In this document: piece by piece, positions 2,178 to 60,904 of the stretch
Numbering within the stretch: the stretch's first letter is position 1
Layout: each line of letters starts with the position of its first letter
Source: Macrostomum lignano
Lineage: Eukaryota
Length of the DNA: 64,000 bases
Direction of reading: 5' to 3'
Assembly: GCA_002269645.1 (NCBI GenBank)
Contig: NIVC01001921.1
Coordinates: forward strand, 62,001-126,000
Program-made: the position numbers and the translations under genes
Notes under the pieces: model-generated
The model's database searches: none
The model's input: only the letters and a program-made list of their open reading frames with translations
What the model was told of the DNA's origin: nothing

Positions 2178-15237
<13,060 letters not shown>

Positions 15238-15890: not shown

Positions 15891-15980
15891 TTCGGGATCA
15901 ATCTGTGCAGCCAGAGATCTGCGATGGCAGGCGCCGCTTCCGCCGGCACTGTTTCCGCCCCTCGAAGTGGCCTCCGCCAT
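15891..15980 (-). CDS. Candidate first coding exon A of the DPP gene (MAEATSRGGNSAGGSGACHRRSLAAQIDPE)
   Basis: aaaaATGG start at 15980, 30 open codons, phase-0 donor GAA|GTGAGT. Joins in frame to the phase-0 acceptor at 15237 (ELVGS). Nearest candidate to the shared exons. Confidence 0.75.
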
Positions 15981-17269
15981 TTTTCCAAATCAAATCTTTC
16001 AGCTGCCTGTCCCTCTCTCCTCGACAAGGGCAAAAAATGATTCTCGTCGTCAAGAAACGAGAAGAAATATCCCATCCTGCGGTCTTTATGATCTCCTCTT
16101 CCATCTATTCCGCCTCTCCCCAACTGCTCATTCGCGCCCGCCATCTGGCGCGTCTCATTTTCGAGCTCGCCTGCCTCTCCTCCCATCGCTTCCTTCCTCT
16201 CTCGCTTCTCCCACTGTCAGAGAGGCAGATGGGAGCTTTCGAGATGGAATTGCTGGCCAAGAAGCCAAAGAGCTTGGCGGAGGAATAAAAGCGGGGGTTG
16301 CAGGTGAGCAATGTCTGCCCTCCCTGCTGTCACCCCTGCTCCTGCCCGCTGCCAAGATGAGCACAAAGAGGAACGGCGGCAAAATAGAAGGGATGCCACC
16401 TGATGCCGGCTGGAAGACAGCTACAGGAGCTGCTGCACTTCTGCTACTATAAGAAGATTGTTATCAGACTGGGGATGGTCGCGTAGTGTTGCTTCGTGCC
16501 AAATTTCTGGCAATTGTTGACTCTCGGCTTATCAGTCAATTCGGTGTTCTTCCTGGGGTCGCTGGCAGATGCTGGCAAACATTTGCCGACAGCTGTCACT
16601 CGAGCTGTCACTCCACTGCTGCCTGGCACTCTATTGGGGTATTTCTGTAACTTTCTGCTCAGACCATCTGCTTGCTTGTCTTTCTGTATTTTTCTTTGCC
16701 ATTAACTCTTGTCTGTCTCCGCGTGGCTCCCGACAGGTTTCTCTGGTTTCACTCCGTTTTTCACTTCATTTTTACTCCGTTTGTCACTCCATTCTCACTC
16801 GATTTGTCACTCTTTCTCACAGTTTTTCTTCTCTCCATGCTCGTCCAACCCAACAAGAAATCTGTACTATAAATGAGCGGCCCGGATGGGCGGCCTCACT
16901 GAGCGGACAGCTCAATACAGAAAGCAGGGACCTGAGACAGCAAGTCACAGATCAAGAAAAGCGAAGATCCATCGATGGGATGGAGAATGCGTCACTCGCG
17001 TGTCAGGGAGCAGCTCAAGTAACAAGAGCCCATATTGCCGTGCCCCAATGTGCATCAATATTGCCCAGCGCCTCCGTGTAGAAGGCAAAAACTTATATCG
17101 ATTTTGCCGAAACCCTCCCTGAGAATTTCAACTGAACCAAAAAATCCCTGCCCACACTCTGAGTGGTCAAGAAGTTTAACAGCATTCGATTTGGCTGCGT
17201 TGAGCATACTACTGATTTGAGTAGGCAGCGGGTGCATTCTGGGAGTGCATTCGAAGGGAACGACAAAAC

Positions 17270-18060
17270 ATTGATCAGGTGGCACCAAATTGATCAGGTG
17301 GGGCCAAATTGATCAGGTGGAGCCAAATTGATCAGGTGGCACCAAATTGATCAGGTGGGGCCAAATTGATCAGGTGGGGCCAAATTGATCAGGTGGAGCC
17401 AAATTGATCAGGTGGCACCAAATTGATCAGGTGGGGCCAAATTGATCAGGTGGGGCCAAATTGATCAGGTGGGGCCGAATTGATCAGGTGGGGCCAAATT
17501 GATCAGGTGGGGCCAAATTGATCAGGTGGGCCAAATTGATCAGGTGGGGCCAAATTGATCAGGTGGGGCCAAATTGATCAGGTGGGGCCAAATTGATCAG
17601 GTGGGGCCAAATTGATCAGGTGGGGCCAAATTGATCAGGTGGGGCCAAATTGATCAGGTGGGGCCAAATTGATCAGGTGGGGCCAAATTGATCAGGTGGG
17701 GCCAAATTGATCAGGTGGGGCCAAATTGATCAGGTGGGGCCAAATTGATCAGGTGGGGCCAAATTGATCAGGTGGGGCCAAATTGATCAGGTGGGGCCAA
17801 ATTGATCAGGTGGGGCCAAATTGATCAGGTGGGGCCAAATTGATCAGGTGGGGCCAAATTGATCAGGTGGGGCCAAATTGATCAGGTGGGGCCAAATTGA
17901 TCAGGTGGGGCCAAATTGATCAGGTGGGGCCAAATTGATCAGGTGGGGCCAAATTGATCAGGTGGGGCCAAATTGATCAGGTGGGGCCAAATTGATCAGG
18001 TGGGGCCAAATTGATCAGGTGGGGCCAAATTGATCAGGTGGGGCCAAATTGATCAGGTGG
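17270..18060. repeat. 19-bp minisatellite (aaattgatcaggtggggcc)n
   Basis: About 41 copies. Confidence 0.96.
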
Positions 18061-18699
18061 GCTAGATTACGCAGACACGCTGATAAGCCGCTCACGAGAT
18101 TCCCTAAGCTACAAAAATCTGCAGCATCCACCTACCTCATCCGCAGTTGCATAAGCCGATTCCATGAAGCCAACTCCGAAATGACAGAACAGAGCGAGCA
18201 AGCACCGGATTTCCAATCACAGCGTGCCTTCACTTTTAAGGGCCAAATTTTACAATACCTGTCTCTCACTGCCTGTCCTGAACTACTCGCAAGCCGTTTC
18301 GGGTGGGAAAGCCTTCAGCCAATCAGCTCTCAGTTTGAAAATGGGGCCGTTAAGCGAACTGTTTTGTTAAAATACCAACTTGTCAAGCCCGGGATGAAAA
18401 ATTGCTGACGGAGCAGCGCTGAAGGCGGATTAGCGAGAATCCGGGGGGGGGGGGATGAGATTGACAAGACGGTGGTGTGACGCTGGCAGCTGCATCAGCT
18501 TAAAACCATAAATGCATCTGATATAAGATCCTGTGAAATAACTCTGAGCTCCCTATGAGATCCCCGAGAATCCCCCCGAGATTGCTATGAGATCACTTTG
18601 GAATCTCTACTAGATAACTGAGAGTCCATGAGTTTCAACCCGAGATCCTATGAGATCTCAGTGACCCCATTACAGCTATTCCTTGAGAATCTAAGTGAG

Positions 18700-18980
18700 A
18701 CCTAATTGAGAATCTAAATGAGATATAATCTTAAGAATCTAAGTATGAGCTAATTAAGAATCCAATCGAGGACTAATGAGATCTAATTAAGAATCTAAAT
18801 GAGACCTAATTAAGAATCTAAGTGAGATCTAATTGAGAATCTAAATGAGATCTAATTAAGAATCTAAGTGAGAGCTAATTAAAGAATCTAAGTGAGATCT
18901 AATTAAAAATCCAAGTGAAATCTAATTAAGAATCTGAGTGAGACCTAATTAAGAATATAAGTGAGACCTAATTGAGAAGG
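18700..18980. repeat. Degenerate ~22-bp minisatellite (gagatctaattaagaatctaagt-like)
   Basis: Direct inspection. Confidence 0.8.
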
Positions 18981-19510
18981 CCAGTGCTATCTCCAGCGCT
19001 TAGTCCCCAATCGCATATGAATCGGTGAGGGATTAATCAACATAGGAGTAAGCTGGCTTAAGAAGCTGAGAAAGGCATAGAAAGTGCTCAAAGCGCTGGA
19101 GAATCTGTGTCCCATTCAATTAGCCGAGCGACTGCCTTCCGGGGCTGGAGATGGGAGAGGAAAAGGGAGGCCCCGGAGCTGCCTCATCTGGCCCCGCCTT
19201 TCCCAATATCCTGCCTCTGTACGATGCGAGCTCTCTGTGCTCCGTGGTGAGGGGTTCTCAGGCGCTGAGCACTCCGGGGTTTCCGCACGACCGGCCGGGC
19301 TGCTCGAGAGATTCGGCCGGGTTTCCTTTGTAAGCCGGGGAAGTTCCCTTTAGTCCCGAGTTCGAATCGACTCCCCAAAAATTAGGGGACGAACTGCGAC
19401 AGTTGAGGTTAGTCGTTAATCCTTCGCTGATTTCAGGCATTTAAATCCTTCTGAACTCACTTGTTTTAGCGCTGTAAATCGTTAATCCTTCGTATGTACT
19501 GTACTGTATC

Positions 19511-21450
19511 GGATTGTAGCCTAGTGGGGGTTGTAGCCTAGTAGGGGTTGCAGCCTAGTGGGGGTTGCAGCCTAGTGGGGGTTGTAGCCTAGTGGGGGTT
19601 GTAGCCTAGTGGGGGTTGCAGCCTAGTGGGGGTTGTAGCCTAGTGGGGGTTTTAGCCTAGTGGGGGTTGTAGCCTAGTAGGGGTAGCAGACTAGTGGGGG
19701 TTGTAGCTTAGTGGGGGTTGTAGCCTAGTGGTGTTTGTAGTCTAGTGGGGGTTGTAGCCTAGTGGGGGTTGTAGCCTAGTGGGGGTTGTAGCCTAGTGGG
19801 GGTTGTAGCCTAGTGGGGGTTATAGCCTAGTGGGGGTTGCAGCCTAGTGGGGGTTGTAGCCTAGTGGGGGTTTTAGCCTAGTGGGGGTTGTAGCCTAGTG
19901 GGGGTTGTACGAGTAGCCTAGTGGGGGTTGCAGCCTAGTGGGGGTTGCAGCTTAGTGGGGGTTGTAGCCTAATGGGGGTTGTAGCCTAATGGGGGGTTGT
20001 AGCCTAGTGGGGGTTGTAGCCTAGTGGGGGTTGTAGCCTAGTGGGGGTTGTAGCCTAGTGGGGGTTGTAGCCTAGTGGGGGTTGTAGCCTAGTGGGGGTT
20101 GCAGCCTAGTGGGGGTTGCAGCCTAGTGGGGGTTGTAGCCTAGTGGGGGTTGCAGCCTAGTGGGGGTTGTAGCCTAGTGGGGGTTTTAGCCTAGTGGGGT
20201 TGTAGCCTAGTGGGGGTTGTACGAGTAGCCTAGTGGGGGTTGCAGCCTAGTGGGGGTTGCAGCTTAGTGGGGGTTGTAGCCTAGTGGGGGGTTGTAGCCT
20301 AATGGGGGGTTGTAGCCTAGTGGGGGTTGCAGCCTAGTGGTGGTTATAGCCTAGTGGGGGTTTTAGCCTAGTGGGGGTTGTAGCCTAGTGGGGGTTGCAG
20401 CCTAGTGGGGGTTGTAGCCTAGTGGGGGGTTGCAGCCTAGTGGGGGTTGTAGCCTAGTGGGGGTTGCAGCCTAGTGGGGGTTGTAGCCTAGTGGGGGTTT
20501 TAGCCTAGTGGGGGTTGTAGACTAGTGGGGGTTGTACGAGTAGCCTAGTGGGGGTTGCAGCCTAGTGGGGGTTGTAGCCTAGTGGGGGTTGCAGCCTAGT
20601 GGGGGTTGTAGCCTAGTGGGGGTTGTAGCCTAGTGGGGGTTGTACGAGTAGCCTAGTGGGGGTTGCAGCCTAGTGGGGGTTGTAGCCTAGTGGGGGTTGT
20701 AGCCTAGTGGGGGTTGTAGCCTAGTGGGGGTTGTAGCCTAGTGGGGGTTGTAGCCTAGTGGGGGTTGTAGCCTAGTGGGGGTTGTAGCCTAGTGGGGGTT
20801 GTAGCCTAGTGGGGGTTGTAGCCTAGTGGGGGTTGTAGCCTAGTGGGGGTTGTAGCCTAGTGGGGGTTGTAGCCTAGTGGGGGTTGTAGCCTAGTGGGGG
20901 TTGTAGCCTAGTGGGGGTTGTAGCCTAGTGGGGGTTATAGCCTAGTGGGGGTTTTAGCCTAGTGGGGGTTGCAGCCTAGTGGGGTTTGTACGAGTAGCCT
21001 AGTGGGGGTTGCAGCCTAGTGGTGGTTATAGCCTAGTGGGGGCTGTAGCCTAGTGGGGGTTGTAGCCTAGTGGGGGTTGTAGCCTAGTGGGGGTTGTAGC
21101 CTAGTGGGGGTTGCAGACTAGTGGGGGTTGCAGACTAGTGGGGGTTGTAGCCTAGTGGGGGTTGTAGCCTAGTGGGGGTTTTAGCCTAGTGGGGGTTGCA
21201 GCCTAGTGGGGGTTGTACGAGTAGCCTAGTGGGGGTTGCAGCCTAGTGGGGGTTGCAGCTTAGTGGGGGGTTGTAGCCTAGTGGGGGGTTGTAGCCTAGT
21301 GGGGGGTTGTAGCCTAGTGGGGCGTTGTAGCCTAGTGGGGGGTTGTAGCCTAGTGGGGGGTTGTAGCCTAGTGGGGCGTTGTAGCCTAGTGGGGGGTTGT
21401 AGCCTAATGGGGGGTTGTAGCCTAATGGGGGGTTGTATCCTAGTGGGGGG
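19511..21450 (+). repeat. 18-bp minisatellite (gttgtagcctagtggggg)n, unit contains a Pol III A-box
   Basis: About 107 copies; the TAGCCTAGTGG core matches TRGCNNAGYGG. Confidence 0.96.
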
Positions 21451-21765
21451 ACTATTGGGGGCCCCACTCCGATGTTAAAGCGTCGAACTCTCGACTTGAT
21501 GGTCGGGGGTTCGATTCCAGATCCCACTGAAACAAGTTATGTGCTTGAGTAAGACACTTAAATCTGCATCGCTTCAGTTCACCCAGCTGTAAAATGGGTG
21601 CCAGCATTAGCTGGGGTAATTGAGGGTGTGTGGCGACCCTCCAGTCCTTGGACTGAACAGCCGTACGCAGCCTTCAGATGCGCCGCGCAATAGCTGCGGC
21701 TGAGCTGTCGGTTGCACATCTGGCTCATTTGGGGCAGGTGTAATCCTATTATATTATTTATTATC
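19511..21765 (+). mobile_element. tRNA-derived CORE-like SINE (family 2) split by amplification of its own A-box
   Basis: Starts GGATTGTAGCCTAGTGG at 19511 and resumes GTTAAAGCG at 21474. B-box GGTTCGATTCC at 21508-21518. CORE-like gtgcttgagtaagacacttaa..cttcagttcacccagctgtaaaatggg at 21541-21598. AT-rich tail at about 21747-21764. Confidence 0.8.
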
Positions 21766-21770
21766 ATGCA

Positions 21771-22258
21771 CTGTAAGTACTGTATGTACTGTATTTACTG
21801 TATGTACTGTATGTAACTGTATGTAACTGTATGTACTGTATGTACTGCATGTACTGTATGTACTGTATGTACTATATGTACTATATGTACTGTATGTGAT
21901 GTATGTACTGTATGTACTGTATGTAACTGTATGTAACTGTATGTAACTGTATGTACTGCATGTACTGTATGTACTGTATGTACTGTATGTACTGTATGTA
22001 ACTGTATGTAACTGTATGTAACTGTATGTAACTGTATGTAACTGTATGTAACTGTATGTACTGCATGTACTGTATGTACTGTATGTACTGCATGTACTGT
22101 ATGTACTGTATGTACTGTATGTACTATATGTACTGTATGTAACTGTATGTAACTGTATGTACTGTATGTAACTGTATGTACTGTATGTACTATATGTACT
22201 GTATGTAACTGTATGTAACTATATGTACTGTATGTGATGTATGTACTGTATGTACTGC
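21771..22258. repeat. 10-bp minisatellite (actgtatgta/actgtatgt)n
   Basis: Directly follows the SINE tail. Confidence 0.93.
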
Positions 22259-22319
22259 ATAAGCATGTCGCCTATCCAGTGAAATCTTTTCTTATTTTTA
22301 TACAATCCGATTGCCTCAC

Positions 22320-22337
22320 CAGAAATGCTCCCTCCAT
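22320..22337 (-). CDS. Candidate short alternative first exon of the DPP gene (MEGAFL)
   Basis: ATG GAG GGA GCA TTT CTG|GTGAGG, phase 0, with an in-frame stop upstream. Short enough to arise by chance. Confidence 0.35.
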
Positions 22338-22659
22338 ACGGCTACTTCAAGTAGAATGAGTAGCTTAACAGGTATTTTATTTAACAAAAAGATTTCCTTA
22401 TTCCCAGAATACTTTCAGCTCGATGTCCCAGCTGTTAAATAATTTATTGCGCAAACTCGAATTTTGAACGGAGATCAAGCGAGTCAAATTCGAAATGCAG
22501 CAGGATCCTGTCTGGTCTCCGGTCTGAGCTCCCCGAGGATTTGCGGGGTCAATATGCTTTGTAGGAGAAAATCCCATCAATAAACTCTGCTGCGAACTCG
22601 GAGCAAACTAACTGGGCTGGATCGATTTTCTAACCGTGATTGGGTGAGTGACAGATGAG

Positions 22660-23080
22660 ATTGAGGCATTGATAAACACACTAGAGATTGATAAACACAC
22701 TAGAGATTGATAAACACACTAGAGATTGATAAACACACTAGAGATTGATAAACACACTAGAGATTGATAAACACACTAGAGATTGATAAACACACTAGAG
22801 ATTGATAAACACACTAGAGATTGATAAACACACTAGAGATTGATAAACACTCTAGAGATTGATAAACACTCTAGAGATTGATAAACACACTAGAGATTGA
22901 TAAACACACTAGAGATTGATAAACACTCTAGAGATTGATAAACACTCTAGAGATTGATAAGCACACTAGAGATTGATAAACACACTAGAGATTGATAAAC
23001 ACACTAGAGATTGATAAACACACTAGAGATTGATAAACACACTAGAGATTGATAAACACACTAGAGATTGATAAACACAC
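22660..23080. repeat. 19-bp minisatellite (gagattgataaacacacta)n
   Basis: About 21 copies. Confidence 0.95.
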
Positions 23081-23458
23081 AAGATGCATCCAATTTCCAG
23101 AGTCAGTTAATGGCTGATTTTACAGCTCTGGCCGCAGTTGCAATTTGATTTAAAGCTCAGTGGGGGGGGGGCAAGCCGGAGCTGAAGACTGAGTGAGGCA
23201 GGCCATGGGGGGCCGATGTTAGTGCTCATATCTCATGGCTGCCATAGCTGGGAGTGAATGGGAGGAGCAGAGCTCGAGATTGAGCAGCATCTCCCACCTC
23301 GGCCTCGGGGAATCCCCAAGCGGGCTGGTGCTAAAAAACATCTCGGCAAATTTCGCCCCTTTGACTCCGGCCGCCCTGCCTGCCCTCTGCTCGCGGAATT
23401 CTTGAAATATTTTCGTCTCTGCTCTCGATTTTATGAGTTTTCGACCGCAGCTTTGCAC

Positions 23459-24246
23459 AGAGGCGCCAGCACCAGAGGCGCCAGCACCAGAGGCGCCAGC
23501 ACCAGAGGCGCCAGCACCAGAGGCGCCAGCACCAGAGGCGCCAGCACCAGAGGCGCCAGCACCAGAGGCGCCAGCACCAGAGGCGCCAGCACCAGAGGCG
23601 CCAGCACCAGAGGCGCCAGCACCAGAGGCGCCAGCACCAGAGGCGCCAGCACCAGAGGCGCCAGCACCAGAGGCGCCAGCACCAGAGGCGCCAGCACCAG
23701 AGGCGCCAGCACCAGAGGCGCCAGCACCAGAGGCGCCAGCACCAGAGGCGCCAGCACCAGAGGCGCCAGCACCAGAGGCGCCAGCACCAGAGGCGCCAGC
23801 ACCAGAGGCGCCAGCACCAGAGGCGCCAGCACCAGAGGCGCCAGCACCAGAGGCGCCAGCACCAGAGGCGCCAGCACCAGAGGCGCCAGCACCAGAGGCG
23901 CCAGCACCAGAGGCGCCAGCACCAGAGGCGCCAGCACCAGAGGCGCCAGCACCAGAGGCGCCAGCACCAGAGGCGCCAGCACCAGAGGCGCCAGCACCAG
24001 AGGCGCCAGCACCAGAGGCGCCAGCACCAGAGGCGCCAGCACCAGAGGCGCCAGCACCAGAGGCGCCAGCACCAGAGGCGCCAGCACCAGAGGCGCCAGC
24101 ACCAGAGGCGCCAGCACCAGAGGCGCCAGCACCAGAGGCGCCAGCACCAGAGGCGCCAGCACCAGAGGCGCCAGCACCAGAGGCGCCAGCACCAGAGGCG
24201 CCAGCACCAGAGGCGCCAGCACCAGAGGCGCCAGCACCAGAGGCTC
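23459..24246. repeat. 15-bp perfect minisatellite (agaggcgccagcacc)n
   Basis: About 52 identical copies. Confidence 0.97.
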
Positions 24247-24641
24247 CAGGAGTTGCAGAAATTTCACTAATGCTGTAATTGGCTCACACCTGGACACCTA
24301 CATACGCGTGGGGCGATGTTTCTCGCAGTTTCCAGCTAGTGGCAACAAATTATCTTAGAAAAGAGCATGCTTAGGCCAATCAAATTCTGCTCATAACTTG
24401 CCCTAAACTGGCTTTTTAGGCTGATATAAAAGCTACGAATTATAATCCAATAAGTACAAGTGCATTTCTAGGAAAGTCCATAAATTGTCGTGTAGCGATC
24501 GAGGACAACCTGAGTCGGCCAGGCCGGGACTTGTAGGACAATGAAATCCGAGTGGCATTGATAAGGGGATACAGAAATGGGGGAGAGGAAGCGCGGAGGA
24601 CCGGGTCCCAACAGCTGCTACAGAAGCCTCTCTTGCCTCAC

Positions 24642-24785
24642 TGTCCGAGACTCTTCCGCTGTTCCATTGCTGAGCACACGGCAATCAATTCCCCCCGATC
24701 CCCAATTCCGACTCCCAATTCGAAAGCCATTTCTGAGCAGCCCTGACCAGCAGCTCAGGACCTGGCGGTGTTCGCGGACAAGCAT
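24642..24785 (-). CDS. Candidate alternative first exon of the DPP gene (MLVREHRQ...GTAEESRT, 48 aa)
   Basis: ATG at 24785, 48 open codons, phase-0 donor ACA|GTGAGG; lies in a unique island next to GA-rich sequence. Confidence 0.3.
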
Positions 24786-25334
24786 TTAAAAGGCTTTAAT
24801 AAAACCCCGCTGCCACTTCAGGCGGGTCCCCGAAGCAGTTTCTCCAAATTTTAGGCGCCAATTTCTGAACTCATATTCGCCTGCGACAGACGGGATCGAG
24901 AGACGGTTGGAGGGCGGTTGGCAGAGAAGAGAAATTTTCACGACAAACTTCTTCCGCCGCAAAAATTGTCGATAGCAACAACTTTATTTGCCCGACAGCG
25001 GTTGCCGGGGAAATAAAAAAATAGAGACAGAGTTAGAGAGATTTCTCGGCAAACGAAGGAAGCGAACCAGAGAGAGAGAGAGAGAGACTGCAGCCACCGC
25101 CTGCTCCATCAATTCTTAATCAGCTCACTGCGAACTGCAACTCCGATCCCCTGGAACCGGGCAGTTTCAGCCCGAACTCCCCAGGGGGAGCGCCGGGATT
25201 CCACTTTGAACTTTGAGGCCGCGCCACTCGAGAAATTCGCGGGCTATCGGGGAGAGGCCGGACTCGAGTCCCAGCGGCTGAGCTGTCTGCCAGTGAAAAT
25301 GTTATTTACGATACATATCGGCTAACTGGCTTGC

Positions 25335-25445
25335 GTGCACGAAAGTTATCCGGTTGGGTTGAGGTGTGACTCACAGCCATGAGGGCATGTCTGAGTGCAG
25401 TATTGGTGCGCTTGTGTGCTCGGAGTCAGCGGAATGAGCAGCTTG
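25335..25445 (+). mobile_element. Diverged fragment of SINE family 1 (3' part)
   Basis: gcgcttgtgtgctcggagtcagcggaatgagcag resembles gcacttgtgtgcctgctccggggagtcggcggaatgggcag at 1745-1786. Confidence 0.5.
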
Positions 25446-25606
25446 AAGGACTTAAGATTGCAGATTTTCCTCAGCATTGCCTCCCCAGTTCGCTTTGACA
25501 GGCTGGGCCTAAATATTGCACCTGCCTGTTAGTTGCTTTTGGGTGCTTCCTAAATTTGGTTTGCTTAAATATTTGTTGACTTGCCTCTCAGGTACTCTGT
25601 CCTCAT

Positions 25607-26492
25607 CATATCTATTCTCACCCAATTTATTCTCACCATAGCCATTCTCACCTAATCTATTCTCACCCTATCTATTCTCACCATATCCATTCTCACCCAA
25701 CCTATTCTCACCATATCCATTCTCACCCAATCTATTCTCACCCAATCTATTCTCACCAAATCCATTCTCACCCAATCTATTCTCACCCAATCTATTCTCA
25801 CCATATCTATTCTCACCATATCTATTCTCACCCAATCTATTCTCACCCAATCTATTCTCACCAAATCCATTCTCACCCAATCTATTCTCACCCAATCTAT
25901 TCTCACCATATCTACTCCCACCCAACCTTATTCTCACCATATCTATTCTCACCTAATCTATTCTCACCATATCCATTCTCACCCAATCTATTCTCACCCT
26001 ATCTACTCCCACCCAATCTATTCTCACCCTATCTACTCCCACCCAATCTATTCTCACCCAATCTATTCTCACCCAATCTATTCTCACCCAATCTATTCTC
26101 ACCCAATCTATTCTCACCCAATCTATTCTCACCATATCTACTCCCACCCAATCTATTCTCATCATATCTATTCTCACCCAACCTATTCTCACCCAATCTA
26201 TTCTCACCCAATCTATTCTCACCCAATCTATTCTCACCCTATCTACTCCCATTCAACCTATTCTCACCCTATCTACTCCCACCCAATCTATTCTCACCAT
26301 ATCCATTCTCACCCAACCTATTCTCACCATATCTACTCCCACCCAATCTATTCTCACCATATCCATTCTCACCCAACCTATTCTCACCATATCTACTCCC
26401 ACCCAATCTATTCTCATCATATCTATTCTCACCCAACCTATTCTCACCATATCTACTCCCACCCAACCTATTCTCACCATATCTACTCTCAC
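25607..26492. repeat. 15-bp minisatellite (ccaatctattctcac)n
   Basis: About 59 degenerate copies. Confidence 0.95.
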
Positions 26493-26597
26493 CCGAGTGT
26501 CGGTAGGATTTTGAGTCTACCTTTTGGTCCTTTCCCTCCTCTCTCATGGCCATAGCCAGTTTCTACACGCCATCAGCGACCCCCTCCGCAGCCTCAC

Positions 26598-26792
26598 CTC
26601 CAGGTTGTCGAACATGGTGTCCACATTTTCAGTCCGTCGATTCCATCGAACTCCCCGAACTCCGCCGCCTCCGCCGCTGCCTCCTCCGCCGCCGCCGGCT
26701 CCGCTGCCGAGCTGACGACCTTCCGAGAGGTGCTGGTGGTGGTGGTGGCCCAGCTGCTGGCCGCCAACCACCGTGGCTCGGGTTGCAAACAT
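26598..26792 (-). CDS. Candidate alternative first exon B of the DPP gene (MFATRATVVGGQQLGHHHHQH..GGGG..VDTMFDNLE)
   Basis: ATG at 26792, 65 open codons with Gly/His low-complexity coding character, phase-0 donor GAG|GTGAGG. Confidence 0.65.
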
Positions 26793-27354
26793 TGTGCCCG
26801 TCTGCCTGCCCACTGCCTGCCGTCACCGCAAGCGGCAGTTTGCCATTTTTGTCCGCCCTGCCTGCCCTCCACTTGTCCGCAGCCACCCCCCCCCCGATTC
26901 CGCAATCCAATCCTCATGCACTCGCCTCACAGCCCGGCCATTTTTTCAACTCCGCAGCATAAATTTCTATCATAAAATTCTTTTCTTGCCTACTAATAGT
27001 AGCTGAAAATCCACATGGAAATGTTTTTCAAGAATAACGAATGGCGCTGTAAGGACTGGAGGGATTAGAAATATTCGCAGAGTGCACACCTGGGCATTCT
27101 TCACTCTTTTAATTCCCTCTGAGCACAGTTTATCTTCCCCTGATCCCACAGGGCCGGACATTGGTTATAATTGAAATTCCGGATAGCAGAGAGAACTGAA
27201 ATCTGTAGCGATAGGCAAACAGGGGGTGAGGAGGGGAGCGGCTCTGAGAGTTGCAAAACGGCCCCGAGAAATGCTGCTCTGCTTTGTCTGACCTGATGAA
27301 TTAGAAAAACGGCTGAGTGCCTTTCGAATACTTGAATAAAGATTTCAATTTAAT

Positions 27355-28940: not shown

Positions 28941-29289
28941 TTCCAGTTTATCTCAGTTTGCACTTGTTTATCTCATTTAATGCCAGTTTATCTCATTACA
29001 GTTGAACTCAGTTGCAATGCGAGAAAGGCAGATGGCAGACTACAGGATCATATCTGCAGCGGAGCAGCTGAGTCTGCTACTCAGACTTATCTGAGGAACT
29101 TTATTTATCCCCATTTGAGATCTGAGGCGCAGATCTGGGACAAGCTCTGCCGCTTGCCCCACTCAATAAATTAGCTGGCTTTGACAGCGGGCTGCCCCAG
29201 CAACCACCGGTCTTAGCTGGGACCGATTTCGCACCTTCAAGCCGAGCTTATCATGAATAAACTGCATTAAGAGAGAATTTCAGACTCGT

Positions 29290-29430
29290 GCTAGAAAATT
29301 GATCCGGGGCTTGGCTTGGTTCCACGCAAACTCGTGAGAGCAAAACTTCAAGGCTCATTGTGCGTCTTTCACCGATGAGAAAGCCGGGGCCGCTGTACAC
29401 CCTCTGTGAGCGTGAGCCTGTGGACAGCAC
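29290..29430 (+). mobile_element. Diverged fragment of SINE family 1 (body)
   Basis: aaattga..ggcttggct and ggggccgctgtacaccctctgtgag match 1590-1720. Confidence 0.55.
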
Positions 29431-29543
29431 CAATGTGGGTGCTCAGGGGTCAGCGAAATGAGATGGGCATGGCTGCTTGGCTCTTTGCTGGCTGCGGGCC
29501 CACTGTCGACTTCCTTGACTTGCGGCAGCGCCCGAAGCCTTTA

Positions 29544-29760
29544 AGTCACGTGAGTTTCATTTTGAAGAGAATTTTCAAGTCACGTGACTTTCATTTTGAG
29601 GGAGTTTTCAAGTCACGTGACTTCCATTTTCGAGGGAGTTTCAAGTCACGTGACTTTCATTTTTGAGAGAATTCTCAAACCACGTGACTTCCATTTTCGA
29701 GGGAGTTTTCAAGTCACGTGACTTTCATTTTTGAGAGAATTCTCAAATCACGTGACTCAC
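29544..29760. repeat. ~33-bp minisatellite carrying the palindrome GTCACGTGAC
   Basis: About 6-7 copies. Confidence 0.85.
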
Positions 29761-30019
29761 GAAAAATAAAGATATTTTTAACTTTTCTCTCTGGTGAAGA
29801 CAGTCTCTTGCTCTTTCCTAAATCTGAGGAATTTAGGTAAAACATCACATGACCTCGAGTTCTCAAAGCGTTCGAGGTCAAATTGTACCGATGCTACAAG
29901 CCAATTTAGCTTCGAAGGTGTATCTAATCTGTCTGAAAAGTAAAGGAAGATAAGAAACCACAGCTGTGACGCCAAAAAATCTCAATCAGAGATGTGACTT
30001 TGATCACACTTCTACGACT

Positions 30020-30411
30020 GGATAGAGGCGCCATATCGGGGAACTGACAGAGGCGCCAGATCGGGGAACTGATAGAGGCGCCAGATCGGGGAACTGACAG
30101 AGGTGCCAAATCGGGGGAACTGACAGAGGCGCCAGATCGGGGAACTGACAGAGGTGCCAAATCGGGGGAACTGACAGAGGCGCCAGATCGGGGAACTGAT
30201 AGAGGCGCCAGATCGGGGAACTGATAGAGGCGCCAGATCGGGGAACTGACAGAGGTGCCAAATCGGGGGAACTGATAGAGGCGCCAGATCGGGGAACTGA
30301 CAGAGGCGCCAGATCGGGGAACTGACAGAGGCGCCAGATCGGGGAACTGATAGAGGCGCCAGATCGGGGAACTGATAGAGGCGCCAGATCGGGGAACTGA
30401 CAGAGGCGCCA
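30020..30411. repeat. 25-bp minisatellite (agaggcgccagatcggggaactgac)n
   Basis: About 15 copies. Confidence 0.94.
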
Positions 30412-30514
30412 TTCGACTTTCGAGCTTAACGTCCAGACCACTTGAAAAACTTCATCAGCAGTTGCGCCTCAGCCTCTAAAACTGCTTCATCAACGTTCAC
30501 TCCATCAGCCTCAC

Positions 30515-30829
30515 CAGCTGTAGCAACTGCAGCTGCTGCTCCTGCACCTGCTTCCTCAGCAAGTCCTGCTGCCTCCGGCGTGCTGCCGTCTCCCGCATGG
30601 AGCACGCACTGCCGCTGCCGCTGCCGCCGACGCCTTCGCCGGCTCCTCCAGCGGCGCCGGTGCCGTCGACTGCCATCGTTGGCGTCGCCTCGCCGCCGTC
30701 GGCGCCAAGCGCGGCCGCCACGCTGCGCCTGAGCTGGCGCTGAAGCTGCGAGCTGCGCCGCTTCGCCAGCCGCCTGTCCTCGTCGTTGGCGTAGTCCTCG
30801 AACAGCGGGTCCGGGGGCCGCTCTGCCAT
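30515..30829 (-). CDS. Candidate alternative first exon C of the DPP gene (MAERPPDPLFEDYANDEDRRLAKRR..QEQQLQLLQL)
   Basis: ATG at 30829, 105 open codons of GC-rich protein-like sequence, phase-0 donor CTG|GTGAGG. A possible acceptor (aaag|attg) near 30916 suggests an upstream UTR exon. Confidence 0.65.
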
Positions 30830-31339
30830 CCGGGTGGCAGCAGCCAGACAGCCTGTCGCAGATCCCGCCAGATGCTCCCACCGGAAATTGCCTGTCCCTG
30901 GCCGCTCCGCCGTCAATCTTTGAGCCGGGCAGCTCAGAGAAATGTCACGCGCACAGCCGAGTCTGCTTTATCTCGGCTTGCTAAATCCATTCTCTTTACC
31001 TGCGAATCCAGGCCTCAATTACAATTGGTCCGAGGTTACCTGTGCCGCGCCGTATCCGGGATTGGCAGCGGTTCAGAGCCGCTGCCTTTCAGCCTCCGCC
31101 TCTCCTGTCATGAGCCGTCTCGGCCCGAACCCCCCCCCCTCCCCTATTCAGAAATCCATTTTTTGCATCGCTCATGAAATTCTGCTTCATTCTTTCTCCC
31201 TCTAATTGTGTGCTGCTGCCAGCTCCCATCCCCTCAGCTCTCCGCCAGCTTTCACTGTTGCCCCATTGTCTTCCGCTGCCTGCGCTCGGCAAAGGCCCGG
31301 CTCTGCCAAGCAGATTCAAATTAGGCCAGGAAGACTCTG

Positions 31340-31442
31340 CCTCCCCAAGGTTGCCCCGGACTCGATTCCGCCACGTGAGGCCACTTTTTTTCAATGAGAC
31401 AGTCAGGGCCGCGTACACCCTGCATGAGCCTGTGCCTGCGTT
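31340..31442 (+). mobile_element. Diverged fragment of SINE family 1 (body)
   Basis: ccccaagg..aatga..cagggccgcgtacaccctgcatgagcctgtgcctgcg matches 1640-1720. Confidence 0.5.
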
Positions 31443-31807
31443 GGGGCAGGGCCAACCCCCCCCCCTGCGAAAGATGCATTCTGAGTTTGAAACCAAATAA
31501 CTTCAATCTTCAAGCAACGTTGGGACTGAGGTTGCCTGGGGAACAGAATGGATGATGCTGGAGTTGACAGGGCCAGGAGCTCTGCCTGCGGCTGTCAGCT
31601 GTAAATGACGAATGAGGCTGTGGAGGTTGGCCCGGCACGGGGCTATCAATATGGGCTGCCGTGCTGGCGACAGGGAGCGGGGAAGAGAGAGTTTTAGAAT
31701 GTTTTGGGAGAAAGTCGGCGTAAAAAATCCAACACAGCGGCTCGGAGAGGGACGGAAGGAAAATTGACCGAAAATGTTTTCAATTCAGAAGGATGGGCAG
31801 TATGAGA

Positions 31808-32685
31808 TGAGAGTCAGATAAGGAAATTCAGACAAGGAGAGAGTCAGACAAAGAGAGAGTCAGACAAGTATAGAGTCAGACAAGAAGAGAGTCAGACAAG
31901 TATAGAGTCAGACAAGGAGAGAGTCAGACAAGTATAGAGTCAGACAAGGAGAGAGTCAGACAAGTATAGAGTCAGACAAGGAGAGAGTCAGACAAGGAGA
32001 GAGTCAGACAAGGAGAGAGTCAGACAAGGAGAGAGTCAGACAGGTATAGAGTCAGACAAGGAGAGGATCAGACAAGGAGAGAGTCAGACAAGGAGAGAGT
32101 CAGACAAGGAGAGAGTCAGACAAGGAGAGAGTCAGACAAGGAGAGAGTCAGACAAGGAGAGACAAGGAGAGAGTCAGACAAAGAGAGAGTCAGACAAGGA
32201 GAGAGAGTCAGACAAGTATAGAGTCAGACAAGGAGAGAGTCAGACAAGGAGAGACAAGGAGAGAGTCAGACAAAGAGAGAGTCAGACAAGGAGAGAGTCA
32301 GACAAAGAGAGAGACAAGGAGAGACAAGGAGAGAGTCAGACAAAGAGAGAGTCAGACAAGGAGAGAGTCAGACAAAGAGAGAGTCAGACAAGGAGAGAGT
32401 CAGACAAGGAGAGAGTCAGACAAGGAGAGACAAGGAGAGAGTCAGACAAAGAGAGAGTCAGACAAGGAGAGAGTCAGACAAGGAGAGAGTCAGACAAGGA
32501 GAGACAAGGAGAGAGTCAGACAAGGAGAGACAAGGAGAGAGTCAGACAAAGAGAGAGTCAGACAAGAAGAGAGTCAGATGAGAAGAGAGTCAGATGAGAA
32601 GAGAGTCAGACAAGGAGAGACAAGAGAGTCAGACAAGAAGAGAGTCAGACAAGGAGAGAGTCAGACAAGGAGAGAGTCAGACAAG
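31808..32685. repeat. 16-bp minisatellite (gagagagtcagacaag)n
   Basis: Direct inspection. Confidence 0.94.
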
Positions 32686-33022
32686 GAAAAATTAAGATAA
32701 AATCGCGTCAGCTTGGATTTCATCAGCTGTCCGAAGCTGTCCATCCGTGTCCGAGCAAAGCCTATAAAATTGAACCGTTTTGTACAGCAGCTCAAACAGC
32801 AGCTCAAATCAACAATCAATGCTTGAGACCAATCGATAAAAATATCTCCCACAGGGGAATCAGATTTCGTCAGCAGCTGGGAATTGGACAAAATGGAAAG
32901 ATTTACAAACTCATTCTTCCTCTTATAAGTTTTTCATCAAACTGGAGCTTAAGAAAATATTTTAACTGTCCCGCCTGCTTTTACTGCAAGTAGGCCAGTG
33001 CGCATTTTGTCAGTCAGCTTAC

Positions 33023-33136
33023 CGCAAGCACATCGGGCGGAATGTCGTTAATATTGACGTTGTTCTTGCCTCGGCGCTTGCCGCGGTACGGCGAGGTGCC
33101 GCTTCGTTCGCCGCCTGCGCCTGATGAAGCGTACAT
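33023..33136 (-). CDS. Candidate alternative first coding exon D of the DPP gene (MYASSGAGGERSGTSPYRGKRRGKNNVNINDIPPDVLA)
   Basis: Acceptor tttcag|gcc at 33164, ATG at 33136, 38 open codons, phase-0 donor GCG|GTAAGC. Confidence 0.7.
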
Positions 33137-34189
33137 GATGATGCCGGATGCTGCGGAGGTTGGCCTGAAAAATTTGTCAAATATTTTCTTCGATTTTCTT
33201 AGAAACGTATATTTGCCCTAAGTGCAGTTAGAACACACAGAGCAGGGGGTTTTGCCATAGACAAATTCTATCAAGAAGCATTAAAAAGATCTGATTTCCC
33301 GAGAAAACTCTCCAGCTCATTTCAAAGAAAATCGAGCTCAGAATTGAATTCGAATCAAAATCATCGCATAAAAAAGGTCAGTTGGGGGCATTGTTGAAAT
33401 TTTGTTATGAATATCGACCCCTTCGCATCGGAAATAATCGTTATTCGCTGCACCTCAAAGCTCAACCTTTGAGCTCACTGGACTCCTTAAATTATTAATG
33501 CACTTCTGCACTTCCTCAGCCCCGCAGCAACCGACTCCTGCTTGACCCCGGCAGCAACTGAGCACAGCTGATGAGCTGTTGTTCATCTCGGCAGAAAATG
33601 GAGAGAAGAAAAAGAAAAAAAATCTGTTGGAGCACCGCGAGTTTTCCCTCCGAGCCGCCCGCCGGTTGGAAGGAGAGAAACCGTCCGGATCAGAGAGGAG
33701 AGGCTGGGAGCAAAGATGACGGACTTCTGTTTATATTGAGAGCGGCAAAGCCTCCCCGTGAGTGAGTTTGAGAGCGCCGCGCTGGCCTGCAGATCCTGCA
33801 GAGGGGGGAGGGCAGCTCATGCGGTCTGCAACTCGATTCTAAAAATAGCGCAGCAGCCAGGAATTTCGAACCCGGTGGTCCCTCTCCCTCCCAGACTAAT
33901 TAAGCCCGACTCAGACTGCGGCGTCTGTCAGGCGCTGGCGAGGTCCCGGGCTCGAATTTCCCGGATGCGGCAGCTTGAGTGAAAATAAAAACGGAGTTTA
34001 GAGCGACTGGGGAAATTCTGCGGGAAATGGACGGCGGAGAGGGGGAAAGGGGGAAAAGGACGTTTGCGAATAAGGAACAGATTTACTGACTGCTGTGGGG
34101 ACTTTGGTTGACTGGGGACTGCGACAGAGTATGACGAAAAAATAGTAACAGCTCCTCATGCACTGAGAAAAACTTAGTCAGACCGCCAT

Positions 34190-36485
<2,296 letters not shown>

Positions 36486-37019
36486 CTGTGCGGTCCACAG
36501 GTCCCCTCTGAGAGCTGGGCGGAGATTCCCAGTCCGCCTGTCACTCATTAATTCCGAAACCTGACAGGGCCGCAGAGTTTATTCCCCTGTCTGGAATTTC
36601 CCCCAGGAATTCTCCGCAGTCCCGCCGGGGCCGAGCAGCCGGTAAATCACAGCCGCTGTGAGCTCTCCGCCTCCCCCCCCTCTGCGGACTCGAGCTCGAT
36701 TTTGTAGAGCAATCGGAATCCGTACGGACAGTGGGGTGCTGAAGCCGTGGCTGTCCGCGACACCTTTCGAGCATTTTACAAGAGAACGGAGAGTAGATAA
36801 AAAGGGAATTTTTTATATCTCGATAGGCGACTGGATGTGAGAGGCCTGGATTTTAATGCAGAATTGTCAAGAGAACTTTACTGGATTTTGAGAACAAGCG
36901 AGCTGAAGAAGAACTGAGAGCAAAAGACGGGCAGAGTGACCGGGGGATGTAGGAACAGCAAGTGCTGGACAAAGCCGGACCGACAGACAGACGACAAACA
37001 GTCAGGACAAGCAGACAAG

Positions 37020-37762
37020 CAGGCAGACAGACAGGCGGCGAATCAGAGCGGACAGGCGGGGAATCGTAGAGGACAGGTGGGGAATCAGAGCCGACAGGCG
37101 GGGAATCAAAGCGGACAGGCGGGGAATCAGAGCGGACAGGCGGGGAATCGCAGAGGACAGGTGGGGAATCAGAGCCGACAGGCGGGGAATCAGAGAGGAC
37201 AGGCGGGGAATCAGAGCGGACAGGCGGGGAATCAGAGCGGACAGGCGGGGAATCAGAGCGGACAGGCGGGGAATCAGAGCGGACAGGCGGGGAATCAGAG
37301 CGGACGGGCGGGGAATCAGAGCCGACAGGCGGGGAATCAGAGAGGACAGGCGGAATCAGAGCGGACAGGCGGGGAATCAGAGCGGACAGGCGGGGAATCA
37401 GAGCGGACAGGCGGGGAATCAGAGCGGACAGGCGGGGAATCAGAGCGGACAGGCGGGGAATCAGAGCGGACGGGCGGGGAATCAGAGCGGACAGGCGGGG
37501 AATCAGAGAGGACAGGCGGGGAATCAGAGCGGACAGGCGGGGAATCAGAGCGGACAGGCGGGGAATCAGAGAGGACAGGCGGGGAATCAGAGAGGATAGG
37601 CGGGGAATCGCAGAGGACAGGTGGGGAATCAGAGAGGACAGGCGGGGAATCAGAGAGGACAGGTGGGGAATCAGAGCGGACGGGCGGGGAATCAGAGCGG
37701 ACAGGCGGGGAATCAGAGCGGACGGGCGGGGAATCAGAGCGGACGGGCGGGGAATCAGAGCG
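37020..37762. repeat. 21-bp minisatellite (aggcggggaatcagagcggac)n
   Basis: About 35 copies. Confidence 0.95.
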
Positions 37763-38124
37763 ACCCCCAGCTTGTCCCCCCAGCTGGGAAAGTACAACGT
37801 GTCGGGCTGCTATTTTGCAAATTAGAATAATGAGGAACGTGGGGGGAAAAAGTCGGCGTCACAACGAAGGAAAGGATGAGGCGCTTCGCAAGGAGGCTGC
37901 AGCTCGTGGGAATTGGGACGCCGCCTTGAGCGAGAATTCCTGGCTCAGTGGGATTTGGCAAGATAGAATGAATTCGATGGGATGCCCTGCTTCACAGGAG
38001 TTGAGAATCCCGCGCGAGTCCGACTGAGGTAGCGAGTGAGAATAATGAGGCAGCCGACAATAAAGCTGTAAGACTGGCACGCACACGGATGCGTACATTG
38101 TGCACCAGCGGCACTGACTCTCAC

Positions 38125-38136
38125 TGCCGCGCTCAT
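38125..38136 (-). CDS. Candidate very short alternative first exon of the DPP gene (MSAA)
   Basis: ATG AGC GCG GCA|GTGAGA, phase 0; could be chance. Confidence 0.25.
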
Positions 38137-38929
38137 GGACAGCTGAAGCAGAAGACCGCTGCAATACAGAAGCAACAGACGGCGGCGAGGTTGGAAATTT
38201 TTCAGTTCAAGGACTACTCAAGTAGATGGACGGGAAACTTCGTTTCTTGGAAAGTTTTAGAAGGCCGGTTTTACCCGAAAGAATACATTAAGGAGAATGG
38301 AGGTTTTTATTTTTTGAGCATAAAATTTGTTAGCTAGCTGGAAAAAGTGGATTTTTTCTGTATCTCGCCTCAAGTGAGCTCGATCTGCAAGAACATGGAT
38401 CTCGGAGTTCCGGACTGAAAATCAGACTCAAGCAACTACTTTCCCCCAAAAGGTCTCAGAGAGCCGCTGCTCTGGGTTGAGTACTGCGGTAATATTCAAG
38501 CCTTCCCGAAGGAACTGCTGAATATATCAGCGATGTTGAAAAGCGGCCAGCTGCCGCCACTCCGCGGAACTGGATCGAGGACAGAAGTTTTGCAGAATGC
38601 TGATCTTCTTGCATTCTGGGAAGACCCAGATCACGGATGAGGGGAGCCGGAAGATGAAAACATGACAGTTCGAGTTAAAAGGGCCGAACGATCCTGTTGG
38701 AATTCTGCCGATCGCCGAAGTTCGAAATTTCGCACTAAAGGCTTTGCCAGAAATGCACCATTCAAAACTGCGATCGATCCCCGCTGGCACCAGGATTGAA
38801 GTCGCAGTGAATGCGCAGATAAAAAACTGTTTCCATGCTTTGGCTTTAAGCGCAATGCAGCACTAATTAGTGGCAGCGTTTAGCAATTAATATGGAGAGT
38901 CATTTACTGCGTGTTTAATCATATGTAGA

Positions 38930-40005
38930 TGATAGATTAGCAATCCATTCTATTCCTTCATCACTGATGTAGGCTAGATTAGCAATCCATTCTATTCCTT
39001 CATGACTAATGTAGGTGATAGATTAGCAATTTATTCTATTCCTTCATGACTGATGTAGGCTAGATTAGCAATCCATTCTATTCCTTCATGACTGATGTAG
39101 GCTAGATTAGCAATCCATTCTATTCCTTCATCTCTGATGTAGGCTAGATTAGCAATCCATTTTATTCCTTCATCTCTGATGTTGGCTAGATTAGCAATCC
39201 ATTCCATTCCTTAAACAGTGATTTTGGATAGATTAGCAATCCATTCCATTCCTTAAACAGTGATTTTGGATAGATTAGCAATCCATTCTATTCCTTAAAC
39301 AGTGATTTTGGATAGATTAGCAATCCATTCTATTCCTTAAACAGTGATTTTGGATAGATTAGCAATCCATTCTATTTCTTAAACAGTGATTTTGGATAGA
39401 TTAGCAATCCATTCTATTCCTTAAACAGTGATTTTGGATAGATTAGCAATCCATTCTATTCCTTAAACAGTGGTTTTGGATAGATTAGCAATCCATTCTA
39501 TTCCTTAAAAAGTGATGTTGGATAGATTAGCAATCCATTCTATTCCTTAAACAGTGATTTTGGACAGATTAGCAATCCATTCTATTCCTTAAACAGTGAT
39601 TTTGGACAGATTAGCAATCCATTCTATTCCTTAAACAGTGATTTTGGACAGATTAGCAATCCATTCTATTCCTTAAACAGTGATTTTGGATAGATTAGCA
39701 ATCCATTCTATTTCTTAAACAGTGATTTTGGATAGATTAGCAATCCATTCTATTCCTTAAACAGTGATTTTGGATAGATTAGCAATCCATTCTATTCCTT
39801 AAACAGTGGTTTTGGATAGATTAGCAATCCATTCTATTCCTTAAAAAGTGATGTTGGATAGATTAGCAATCCATTCTATTCCTTAAACAGTGATTTTGGA
39901 CAGATTAGCAATCCATTCTATTCCTTAAACAGTGATTTTGGACAGATTAGCAATCCATTCTATTCCTTAAACAGTGATTTTGGACAGATTAGCAATCCAT
40001 TCTAT
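38930..40005. repeat. 42-bp minisatellite (gatagattagcaatccattctattccttaaacagtgattttg)n
   Basis: About 25 copies in two subtypes. Confidence 0.95.
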
Positions 40006-40647
40006 CCCCTCACGCACTCGAGAGTTCGACAGTGCAGCGGTGCTCGCCCTGCAGTTCTCACCTGTCAGCAGTCAGCGGTAGAACACAGCAGCAGTTGCAC
40101 TGCTGCAGCTCTTTCTATGACGTCACGGCAGTACTTTGTTCTTGTAGCAGAAATTTTCACCGTTATAGCTATACGGCATCACTCATAAATATTGTCTGGG
40201 GGTGAGCTGGGCTGCGCCGAAGTCCTGGTGGACAATGCCCCCCCCCCCCTGCTGCGCTGATAACCCCAGCAGCTCGCCAAGCTGCTCTGGGCTGGGGGCG
40301 CCCATCAGAGCGGATTGGCCGATAAGCGCACCTCAGGCGGCTGGGCTCTCCCGCATTGGCCCGGTCAGTTCTGCAGCAAAAAGAGCTGCCCACGCTCTGA
40401 TGCCGCTGAGGGCCAAATTGATTGACCCAGAGACTGGCTGGCAACCGGCTGATGCCGCAGCGGCTTCCCCTATTCTTCAGTGTTTTATGAAATTGCCCTG
40501 AACACAATGGCGGCTAATCGCGCGTCCAGGAGAAATGCAGATTTTACAGCTTAGGCACGGGGGGACAAGAGATGCAGAGGATTCTGGGAGCCTGCAGAGG
40601 ATGAGGATTGATGAGGATGCGAGGATTCTGCTCAAAAATATTTTGAT

Positions 40648-40975: not shown

Positions 40976-41916
40976 GATGTGGGAGTAAATCAGATGCAAA
41001 AAGTCGGAATTAACAAAGCCACTTACTGTCACACAGCATCTGATGTTTTCATTGACATTCATCTCAGCCATGCCTGAATCTCAAGATTCAAGAGGAAGGC
41101 GGAGCAGCAGGATTTAATTGAGAAGGAAAATCGGAATTGGTTTTCTGTTTTCCTATAGTTGGACTTGGCAGTAACCAGGAGATAAGTGCGCAGGAAAGAT
41201 TGAGAGAGGTAAGGAAAAGAGTTAGGGAGAAGGGCGAGAGGGTGAGGGAGAGGGTGAGAGGGTGAGGAGAGGGTGAAGAAGATGGTGAGGGAGAGGGTGA
41301 TAGGGTGAGGGAGAGGACGCAAATCAAACACATACGTACACTAGTCGTAGTAGGCAATGATTAGAAAATAACGACTGATTGATATATTTGAAGTCAGCGT
41401 GGATTTGCTGTGCGACTTGAATGGCAGATGCTTGTGGCACACAGTTGCCTTTTATTGCCTGTAGCTCTTTTTAGCACTAATAAAATCACAATGGTGTCAC
41501 CTTCTGGACTTCCAGAAGGCGCAAGCGGCTGTTTCATTCGAGGTGGCACTCGCAAGTTTGTCAAGAAAAAGTTTGAAATAGCAATATTTTGGAGAGCGGC
41601 AGTGCTTAAACTACAGTTGTGTTTTTTATACGGGTTTTGTAAAGATTTGCTATTCAAAGGTTCCAAGGTATCGCCATAGACAATTCGGTGGGAAAGTTCC
41701 GCGCTTAGTACGAAAGTACGAGATTGTACGATATTGCACCATGACTACGTGGCTCTGATATTCGATTATTGCCATAGACGATTCCATCTTGGCAAGTTCA
41801 TCCAGGTCTTGGTCAGTCAAAAGCCGTATATGTGGACACTGAGCCAGAAAAGTATCAAAATCATTTTCACCTCCAGCACTGGCAGTTCCGTGAACTGAGA
41901 ACCATCTAATTCTTCC

Positions 41917-60847: not shown

Positions 60848-60904
<57 letters not shown>

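Follow-up and report, generated by a model that had tools for sequence, protein, structure and literature searches.

A candidate array of alternative start exons upstream of a DPP4-family membrane peptidase gene in the flatworm Macrostomum lignano

A 64-kb stretch of the Macrostomum lignano genome (contig NIVC01001921.1, positions 62,001 to 126,000; hereafter the window) carries a gene for a DPP4-family (S9B) peptidase, preceded by a long 5' region in which several candidate first exons share a single downstream splice partner. The whole feature lies on the minus strand, and coordinates are those of the window unless a paralogous locus is named; in sequences, a slash marks a splice boundary. 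Our preferred explanation, which we hold with a probability of roughly 0.6, is that the region is an inherited array of alternative start exons giving different cytoplasmic tails to one shared membrane anchor. Under this explanation, several ATG exons between ~15.2 and 33 kb, each ending at a codon boundary on a GT[AG]AG or GTAGG donor, could each be spliced to a single phase-0 acceptor at 15237. The choice of start exon, presumably made through alternative transcription starts, would yield isoforms with the same transmembrane segment and the same catalytically competent ectodomain but with tails of 105 (exon C), 65 (exon B) and 10 (exon E') residues, probably also 38 (exon D) and possibly 30 (exon A). 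The B tail would place a conserved segment, RWNRRTENVDTMFDNLE, next to the membrane, and the various tails may modulate trafficking or a partner such as Kv4/Shal. This layout would have come down from the ancestor of both M. lignano paralogs, and probably from a bilaterian DPP6/10-like gene.

The peptidase gene and its shared exon 2

Exon 2 (15123-15237, 115 nt) encodes an ELVGS juxtamembrane motif and a transmembrane helix. Its acceptor reads ...aaaatccag/GAGCTGGTGGGGAGC and joins ELVGS in phase 0, just as had been proposed in a note made earlier from this DNA alone (hereafter the original prediction), while its donor, CCAG/gtgagc, is in phase 1. The transmembrane segment is 55% identical to residues 82-121 of human DPP6, and the exon 2 segment gives no alignment with the DPP4 N-terminus. 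It is this juxtamembrane and transmembrane region that sets DPP6/10 apart from DPP4, and it mediates binding to Kv4. A phase-0 intron directly before ELVGS is present in both the window gene and its M. lignano paralog. The position of this junction is common to the paralog, to all vertebrate DPP6 N-terminal variants and to isoforms X1-X3 of the clam Ruditapes philippinarum, and a motif of the ELVGS..NW.GI.IALLVI type is also found in mollusc, arthropod and nematode relatives. Comparison with the vertebrate genes thus bears out the proposal that this is the same phase-0 junction as that at the start of exon 2 in DPP6 and DPP10 (PMC3973911).

Downstream of exon 2, DPP4-family exons extend over 2181-15122, with introns that are half minisatellite. 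One of them, encoding 128 residues, matches PDB structures of DPP4, DPP6 and DPP10 equally well (E ~1e-15). A single internal exon gave no match in a word-indexed protein search. When the exons are stitched into a protein and searched, the exon peptides prove identical to the M. lignano UniRef models P0001 and P0002; next comes a 47%-identical M. lignano paralog (P0003, BOX15_Mlig002127g4), and after it mollusc, arthropod and vertebrate DPP6/DPP10-like proteins at ~30%. The matches of the stitched protein carry the domains DPPIV_N (PF00930) and Peptidase_S9 (PF00326). The catalytic Ser-Asp-His triad is intact (GWSYGG, HGTADDNVH and DDSHG), and the paralog likewise has GWSYGG. Retention of these three motifs rules out an inactive DPP6/10: the loss of the catalytic serine typical of those proteins, to Asp in DPP6 and Gly in DPP10, is not seen. 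Nor does the gene have the DPP4/FAP-type layout, in which a cytoplasmic tail of ~6 residues stands right before the anchor without an ELVGS exon. By its homologs, then, the gene is a type II membrane peptidase of the DPP4 family (S9B), in the DPP6/DPP10/fly-DPP10 lineage, and the DPP-family membrane anchor of the original prediction is upheld as part of a type II membrane protein. Drosophila DPP10 presents the same combination of sequence features: its transmembrane region is DPP10/6-like, its catalytic serine region is DPP4-like, and it combines Kv4 binding with peptidase activity (PMC4873792, Shiina et al. 2016).

Start exons upstream of exon 2

The original prediction listed eight donors upstream of exon 2, all of which are present with the sequences it gave. 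Four unrelated ATG-led open reading frames (ORFs), here called A to D, do end at phase-0 donors in frame with ELVGS. Two of them, B and C, are conserved in the paralog. The comparison used the paralog locus L001, of which two further copies exist (L002 and L003), with 10 kb of flanking sequence, ending just upstream of the exon here called C'; the contigs of the paralog are NIVC01000788.1 and NIVC01000152.1. In L001, C' lies at 970-1251, B' at 3564-3737, a second B-type exon (B2') at ~7051-7191, the annotated exon 1 (E) at 10001-10042, and exon 2 at 16827. The paralog exon 2 begins cag/GAGCTGGTTGGC (ELVGN), at the same phase-0 junction. A translated comparison of the region upstream of it with the window returns two non-repeat matches, one at the end of B and one at the start of C, together with a frame-shifted match over exon 2.

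Exon B (26598-26792) encodes 65 residues that begin MFATRATV, continue through a His/Gly-rich stretch and end in RWNRRTENVDTMFDNLE/GTGAGG. Its paralog counterpart, B', runs from MFAARVTV to RFNRRTENVDTVFENME/GTGAGA, the two final segments being those that match. Exon C (30515-30829) encodes 105 residues, MAERPPDPLFEDYANDEDRR...QLLQL/GTGAGG, with an acidic PPDPLFEDY head and a Gln-rich end; here the match lies at the start of the exon (PPDPLFEDYAND in the window, PPDPLFEDYADD in the paralog), and C' as a whole reads MSAPPDPLFEDYADD...ARLAQLQA/GTGAGG. With the complete ORFs of B' and C' read in this way, B and C are conserved from ATG to donor. The 25 codons compared between B and B' comprise 6 that are unchanged, 13 with synonymous and 6 with non-synonymous differences, a pattern that indicates selection on the protein. 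The conserved segment of the B-type tail, RxNRRTENVDTxFxNxE, adjoins the membrane. On this comparative evidence, B and C are real start exons under constraint at the protein level.

A third conserved exon, absent from the original prediction, was found by searching the window for an exon of the type annotated as exon 1 in the paralog (ATG...MSESEYNDDLDADE/GTAGGG). Designated E' (18136-18165), it encodes a 10-residue acidic tail, MESAYATADE/GTAGGT. The final 14 nt of E', GCGGATGAGGTAGG, match the end of the paralog exon 1 exactly and occur once in the window, where 0.01 occurrences are expected. No phase-0 AG lies upstream of E', so that it can serve as a start exon only. The ATG of E' is preceded, at distances of ~40 and ~155 nt, by two inverted CCAAT boxes (GATTGG; window 18200-18330, minus strand), which may be promoter elements and are weak evidence by themselves.

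Each of the three conserved exon families ends in phase 0, and the order C-B-E-exon 2, together with the ELV(G)N junction, is the same at both loci. The loci differ in that the paralog has two B-type exons, no A-like exon, an E of 14 residues rather than the 10 of E', and an intron 1 of 6.8 kb after E. The additional exon B2' (MLASRSGAMPSGG...RTETVDQTFDRLE/GTGAGG) occurs in all three copies of the paralog (L002 7037-7159, L003 5943-6065) and has no counterpart in the window, which has one B; a B-type exon has thus been duplicated in tandem. Taking homology and coding signal together, exon 2, B, C and E' are real and conserved exons.

The number of candidate ORFs also exceeds expectation. Non-repeat sequence amounts to 12.3 kb between 15238 and 41100. 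There, the minus strand contains six ATG-led ORFs of at least 30 residues that end at a phase-0 GT[AG]AG donor and the plus strand contains two, whereas shuffles of the same sequence give 1.5 +/- 1.2 (P=0.003). The excess thus amounts to about four ORFs, leaving one or two that chance would supply. A further 38 ATG...GTGAG candidates within a 15-bp minisatellite at 25610-26494 were discarded as artefacts of the repeat unit. As scored by a codon model trained on 1147 DPP codons (G+C content at third positions, GC3, of 0.77), C reaches 0.49 bits/codon, with a GC3 of 0.88, the highest score in the 15-56 kb interval, and B reaches 0.42. D scores 0.37 in a frame-specific manner (-0.27 and -0.47 in its other frames), the best value among non-genic segments, while the ORF ending at 33479 scores -0.33. 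A frame-by-frame scan of 15.3-56 kb picks out C, B and D as the only segments between exon 2 and 41 kb that look coding on the minus strand; whatever else scores is part of an SLC4-like gene on the plus strand or of a retroelement fragment. C, B and D being the sole coding-like segments, their donors have no other evident coding exon to join. A Pfam scan of A-D finds no domains, and none of the islands that carry A-F is a dispersed repeat.

Exon D (33023-33136) encodes a basic tail of 38 residues, MYASSGAGGERSGTSPYRGKRRGKNNVNINDIPPDVLA/GTAAGC, and is probably a first coding exon, as its codon usage suggests. Exon A (15891-15980) remains a candidate: its 30 residues end in MAEATSRGGNSAGGSGACHRRSLAAQIDPE/GTGAGT, a strong donor, and its start lies in an aaaATGG context. 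An in-frame stop three codons upstream and the lack of an in-frame acceptor mean that A, too, could act as a start exon only. Of the start exons in the original prediction, B and C are thus coding sequence under purifying selection, while A lacks independent support. The weaker candidates that it named fare less well, their donors being present but at chance level and without support. The ORF at 24642-24785 (48 residues) scores -0.29, is negative in all frames, shows no conservation in the paralog and is judged to be a chance occurrence; those at 22320-22337 (MEGAFL/GTGAGG, 6 residues) and 38125-38136 (MSAA/GTGAGA, 4 residues) are unsupported. The proposed total of four to seven tails does not hold, given that A is only an ORF with a donor and that these three candidates have nothing in their favor. 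An isolated donor without an ORF at 40062-40070 (CAG/GTGAGA) is likewise unsupported; it could end a 5' untranslated region (UTR) exon, for instance one preceding D. Just outside the 15891-40062 interval, a short ATG exon with a strong donor at 41027-41071, MAEMNVNENIRCCVT/GTAAGT, is retained as a lead only.

Competing explanations

Several points weigh against the alternative-start explanation. Alternative use of the exons and a separate promoter for each are inferred from genomic sequence. A search with the concatenated A-D protein finds no database protein that contains these tails, the GenBank model of the paralog uses exon E alone, and an ab initio M. lignano model, P0145, chains C'-B'-B2'-E-exon 2. 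Exon A scores 0.03 bits/codon without frame preference and no counterpart of it was found in the paralog, while the support for D consists of codon bias alone. Finally, phase-0 AGs occur upstream of window B (at -24 and -9, both weak) and of paralog B', B2' and E, so that some of these exons could also be internal.

This last point leads to a different arrangement, in which the upstream ORFs would be consecutive exons (C to B to exon 2, for example) encoding one cytoplasmic domain of ~180-200 residues. All of the donors and several possible acceptors are in phase 0; besides the two AGs before window B, the E acceptor of the paralog (ccccag/ATC) has a good pyrimidine tract, B' and B2' also have in-frame acceptors, and P0145 does join the paralog exons. 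That model is unreliable, however, because it reads the start of B' out of the conserved frame and skips the conserved PPDPLFEDY start of C'. Moreover, conservation begins at the ATG, with in-frame stops two codons before it in C' and four codons before it in B'. C' has no phase-0 AG, and B' has only an AT-rich aaatag/CTG at -12, created by its own stop codon. These stops and the lack of usable acceptors make A, E' and C' start exons only, and very probably B' as well; in the window, neither E' nor A can be entered in frame. Conservation is lacking from the putative acceptors up to the ATGs (AVGRQTGT versus LIKV), and each of the three B-type exons opens with M[FL]A[TAS]R. It is for these two reasons that we favor alternative starts and consider a chain unlikely. 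We regard it as very improbable that C and B (with C', B' and B2') form a small unrelated upstream gene, syntenic with both DPP paralogs. In favor of such a gene, no annotated DPP protein contains C or B, and neither has a Pfam domain; but the conserved donors at which B and C end call for an acceptor further downstream, the minus strand offers no other coding-like segment before exon 2, and at two loci whose proteins are only 47% identical both exons agree with the DPP exon in strand, order and phase.

For part of the array, chance is a serious competitor. That ATG and GTRAG have come together by accident in exon A, the three weak candidates and perhaps also D is only slightly short of an even bet, given the ~1.5 ORFs of at least 30 residues expected in shuffled sequence, the near-zero score of A, the negative score of the 24642 candidate and the failure to find paralog counterparts. 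Against this, the excess of ORFs leaves room for both A and D once the negative-scoring ORFs at 24642 and 33479 are set aside. The score of D is frame-specific and tops all non-genic segments, and A has its strong donor and favorable start context.

A further possibility concerns trans-splicing. The M. lignano spliced leader (SL), CGGTCTCTTACTGCGAAGACTCAATTTATTGCATG, is 35 nt long, ends in ATG and is added to transcripts of ~30% of genes, at acceptors with the motif YTNCAG (PMC8629364). The leader ending in ATG and the exon 2 acceptor being in phase 0, joining the two would read ATG/GAG CTG... and so encode a nearly tail-less M-ELVGS protein. This could be the main mRNA, with the upstream exons minor, or the first exons could themselves be SL-capped; we think either rather doubtful as an account of the locus, although the route is compatible with alternative starts and the two are not mutually exclusive. 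The exon 2 acceptor, ATCCAG, fits TNCAG, a partial motif. Full-motif TTTCAG acceptors lie 28 nt upstream of the ATG of D (tttttcag) and 45 nt upstream of that of paralog B', and these two exons could be leader-capped or preceded by a 5' UTR exon. On the other hand, upstream cis donors normally outcompete trans-splicing (PMC8629364), and the peptides of the upstream exons are under selection, as the conservation of B and C shows.

Surroundings, relatives and ancestry of the array

About half of the first-exon interval is minisatellite, and the original prediction held that the exons are insulated from one another by these repeats. The share of tandem repeats, however, is 51% in both the array and the gene body and 57% in the neighboring SLC4-like gene. 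With density equal in array and gene body, the repeats are a property of the introns of this genome and not of the array, and the idea of insulation is not sustained. Over the full 64 kb, 39 tandem arrays built of units of 4-93 bp account for 46% of the sequence; among them are two AGAC-type arrays of ~2.3 kb each (12357-14638 and 34192-36485). A dispersed repeat of ~290 nt occurs within the array (21470-21757) and again at L001 16517-16806, directly upstream of the paralog exon 2, the two being 70-95% similar in translation. ARAGORN finds no tRNA gene in the whole window, hence none that overlaps the 21470-21757 repeat.

Exons of an SLC4-type bicarbonate/anion transporter occupy 51531-63414 on the plus strand. 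The segment at 58110-58382 matches HCO3_cotransp in Pfam (E=1e-18), coding probably begins in an exon near 51.5 kb, and 52219-52494 is likely to be an exon of the cytoplasmic domain. This gene is head-to-head with the DPP gene and so bounds the 5' region of the latter. The 10 kb between them contains a minus-strand retroelement fragment (48106-49592) whose 341-residue ORF has an RNase H Pfam match (E=3e-12) and an RT-like stretch upstream. A plus-strand ORF of 134 residues at 45354-45758 has one putative transmembrane helix (AFAVSAALIVLVIVAAVLILFW) and no Pfam match.

The variable tails of vertebrate DPP6 and DPP10 set the inactivation speed of Kv4 A-type potassium channels. Their genes have several ATG first exons (DPP6a/K/L/S/D and DPP10a-d) in front of a common core, in agreement with the statement in the original prediction that vertebrates swap first exons at the ELVGS junction (PMC3973911). 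The window gene shares with them the type II S9B fold and the beginning of exon 2 at ELVGS in phase 0. It differs in that the catalytic triad is kept, in that its core has ~13-15 blocks in 13 kb against 25 exons in the vertebrate gene, and in that the vertebrate tails have no detectable similarity to tails B, C, D or A. The paper on Drosophila DPP10 (PMC4873792) discusses no N-terminal isoforms.

The clam R. philippinarum, another lophotrochozoan, swaps N-terminal exons at this junction. Its three isoforms X1-X3 differ only before ELVGS, where they read MMEFVSS...STFK, MHSAGYRFAGSRRGPKLR and MEKSPQHDSDQTDE, and an acidic MSE..EY.DD type of tail is common to the flatworm paralog and clams (MSEYDDFEE and MGSEYDDFED). 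Mollusc DPP4/6-like proteins (P0128, P0130 and P0135 of Dreissena polymorpha, and P0147) carry MNS(V/A)AGASNV... ahead of ELVGT, which is strikingly like vertebrate exon 1a, MNQTAGASNNIRC, the source of the DPP6a/DPP10a 'ball' MNQTAG(A/V)SNN(V/I)RC. This likeness suggests that the exon-1a type is older than the protostome-deuterostome split. An invertebrate protein starting MAMIQSAGASGSV.../ELVGN was also found. The mollusc proteins were predicted by Gnomon, and none of their tails is related to B, C or D. In the window, no clear counterpart of exon 1a (MNQTA) or of the similar Dreissena start was found, only the candidate at 41071-41027, whose peptide faintly resembles the exon-1a pattern MNQTAG.SNN[VI]RC. 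It ranks first of 59 by anchored scoring and is equalled by controls in local scoring, and it lacks the AGAS core of Dreissena and vertebrates.

The tails themselves appear confined to the flatworm. A HMMER search of 1.84 billion representatives with the tails plus exons 2-3 finds no homologues of A-D outside M. lignano, returning P0145 and a poly-Gly false match; B, C and D have no detectable relatives elsewhere, and the tails resemble those of vertebrates and molluscs no more closely than plus-strand controls do. The architecture is another matter. The original prediction saw an independently expanded cassette, a view not supported in the light of a paralog holding the same exon families in the same order and of clam isoforms that swap their N-termini at the same junction. 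The array shared with the paralog, the Ruditapes isoforms and the exon-1a-like start in Dreissena together make the architecture look inherited, and not newly invented.

The locus would thus represent alternative first exons of the DPP6/DPP10 type, here in a flatworm and ahead of a catalytically intact protein, and its value is mainly evolutionary. Earlier work placed the origin of the isoform system only 'before the DPP6/DPP10 split' (PMC3973911). The flatworm junction and 5' array, the clam isoforms and the Dreissena start would push this design back to protostome-deuterostome ancestry, in peptidases that are still active. More speculatively, the start-exon array may be an ancestral bilaterian feature of a protein that was both an active peptidase and a Kv4/Shal auxiliary subunit, a scaffold on which flatworms would have evolved tail families of their own, the B type among them, that tune gating or trafficking cell type by cell type, with the AUG of the SL adding a tail-less M-ELVGS isoform. 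The SL-derived form, if true, would be a route to an N-terminal isoform that vertebrates lack. As M. lignano is ready for transgenesis, the isoform promoters and tails are directly testable.

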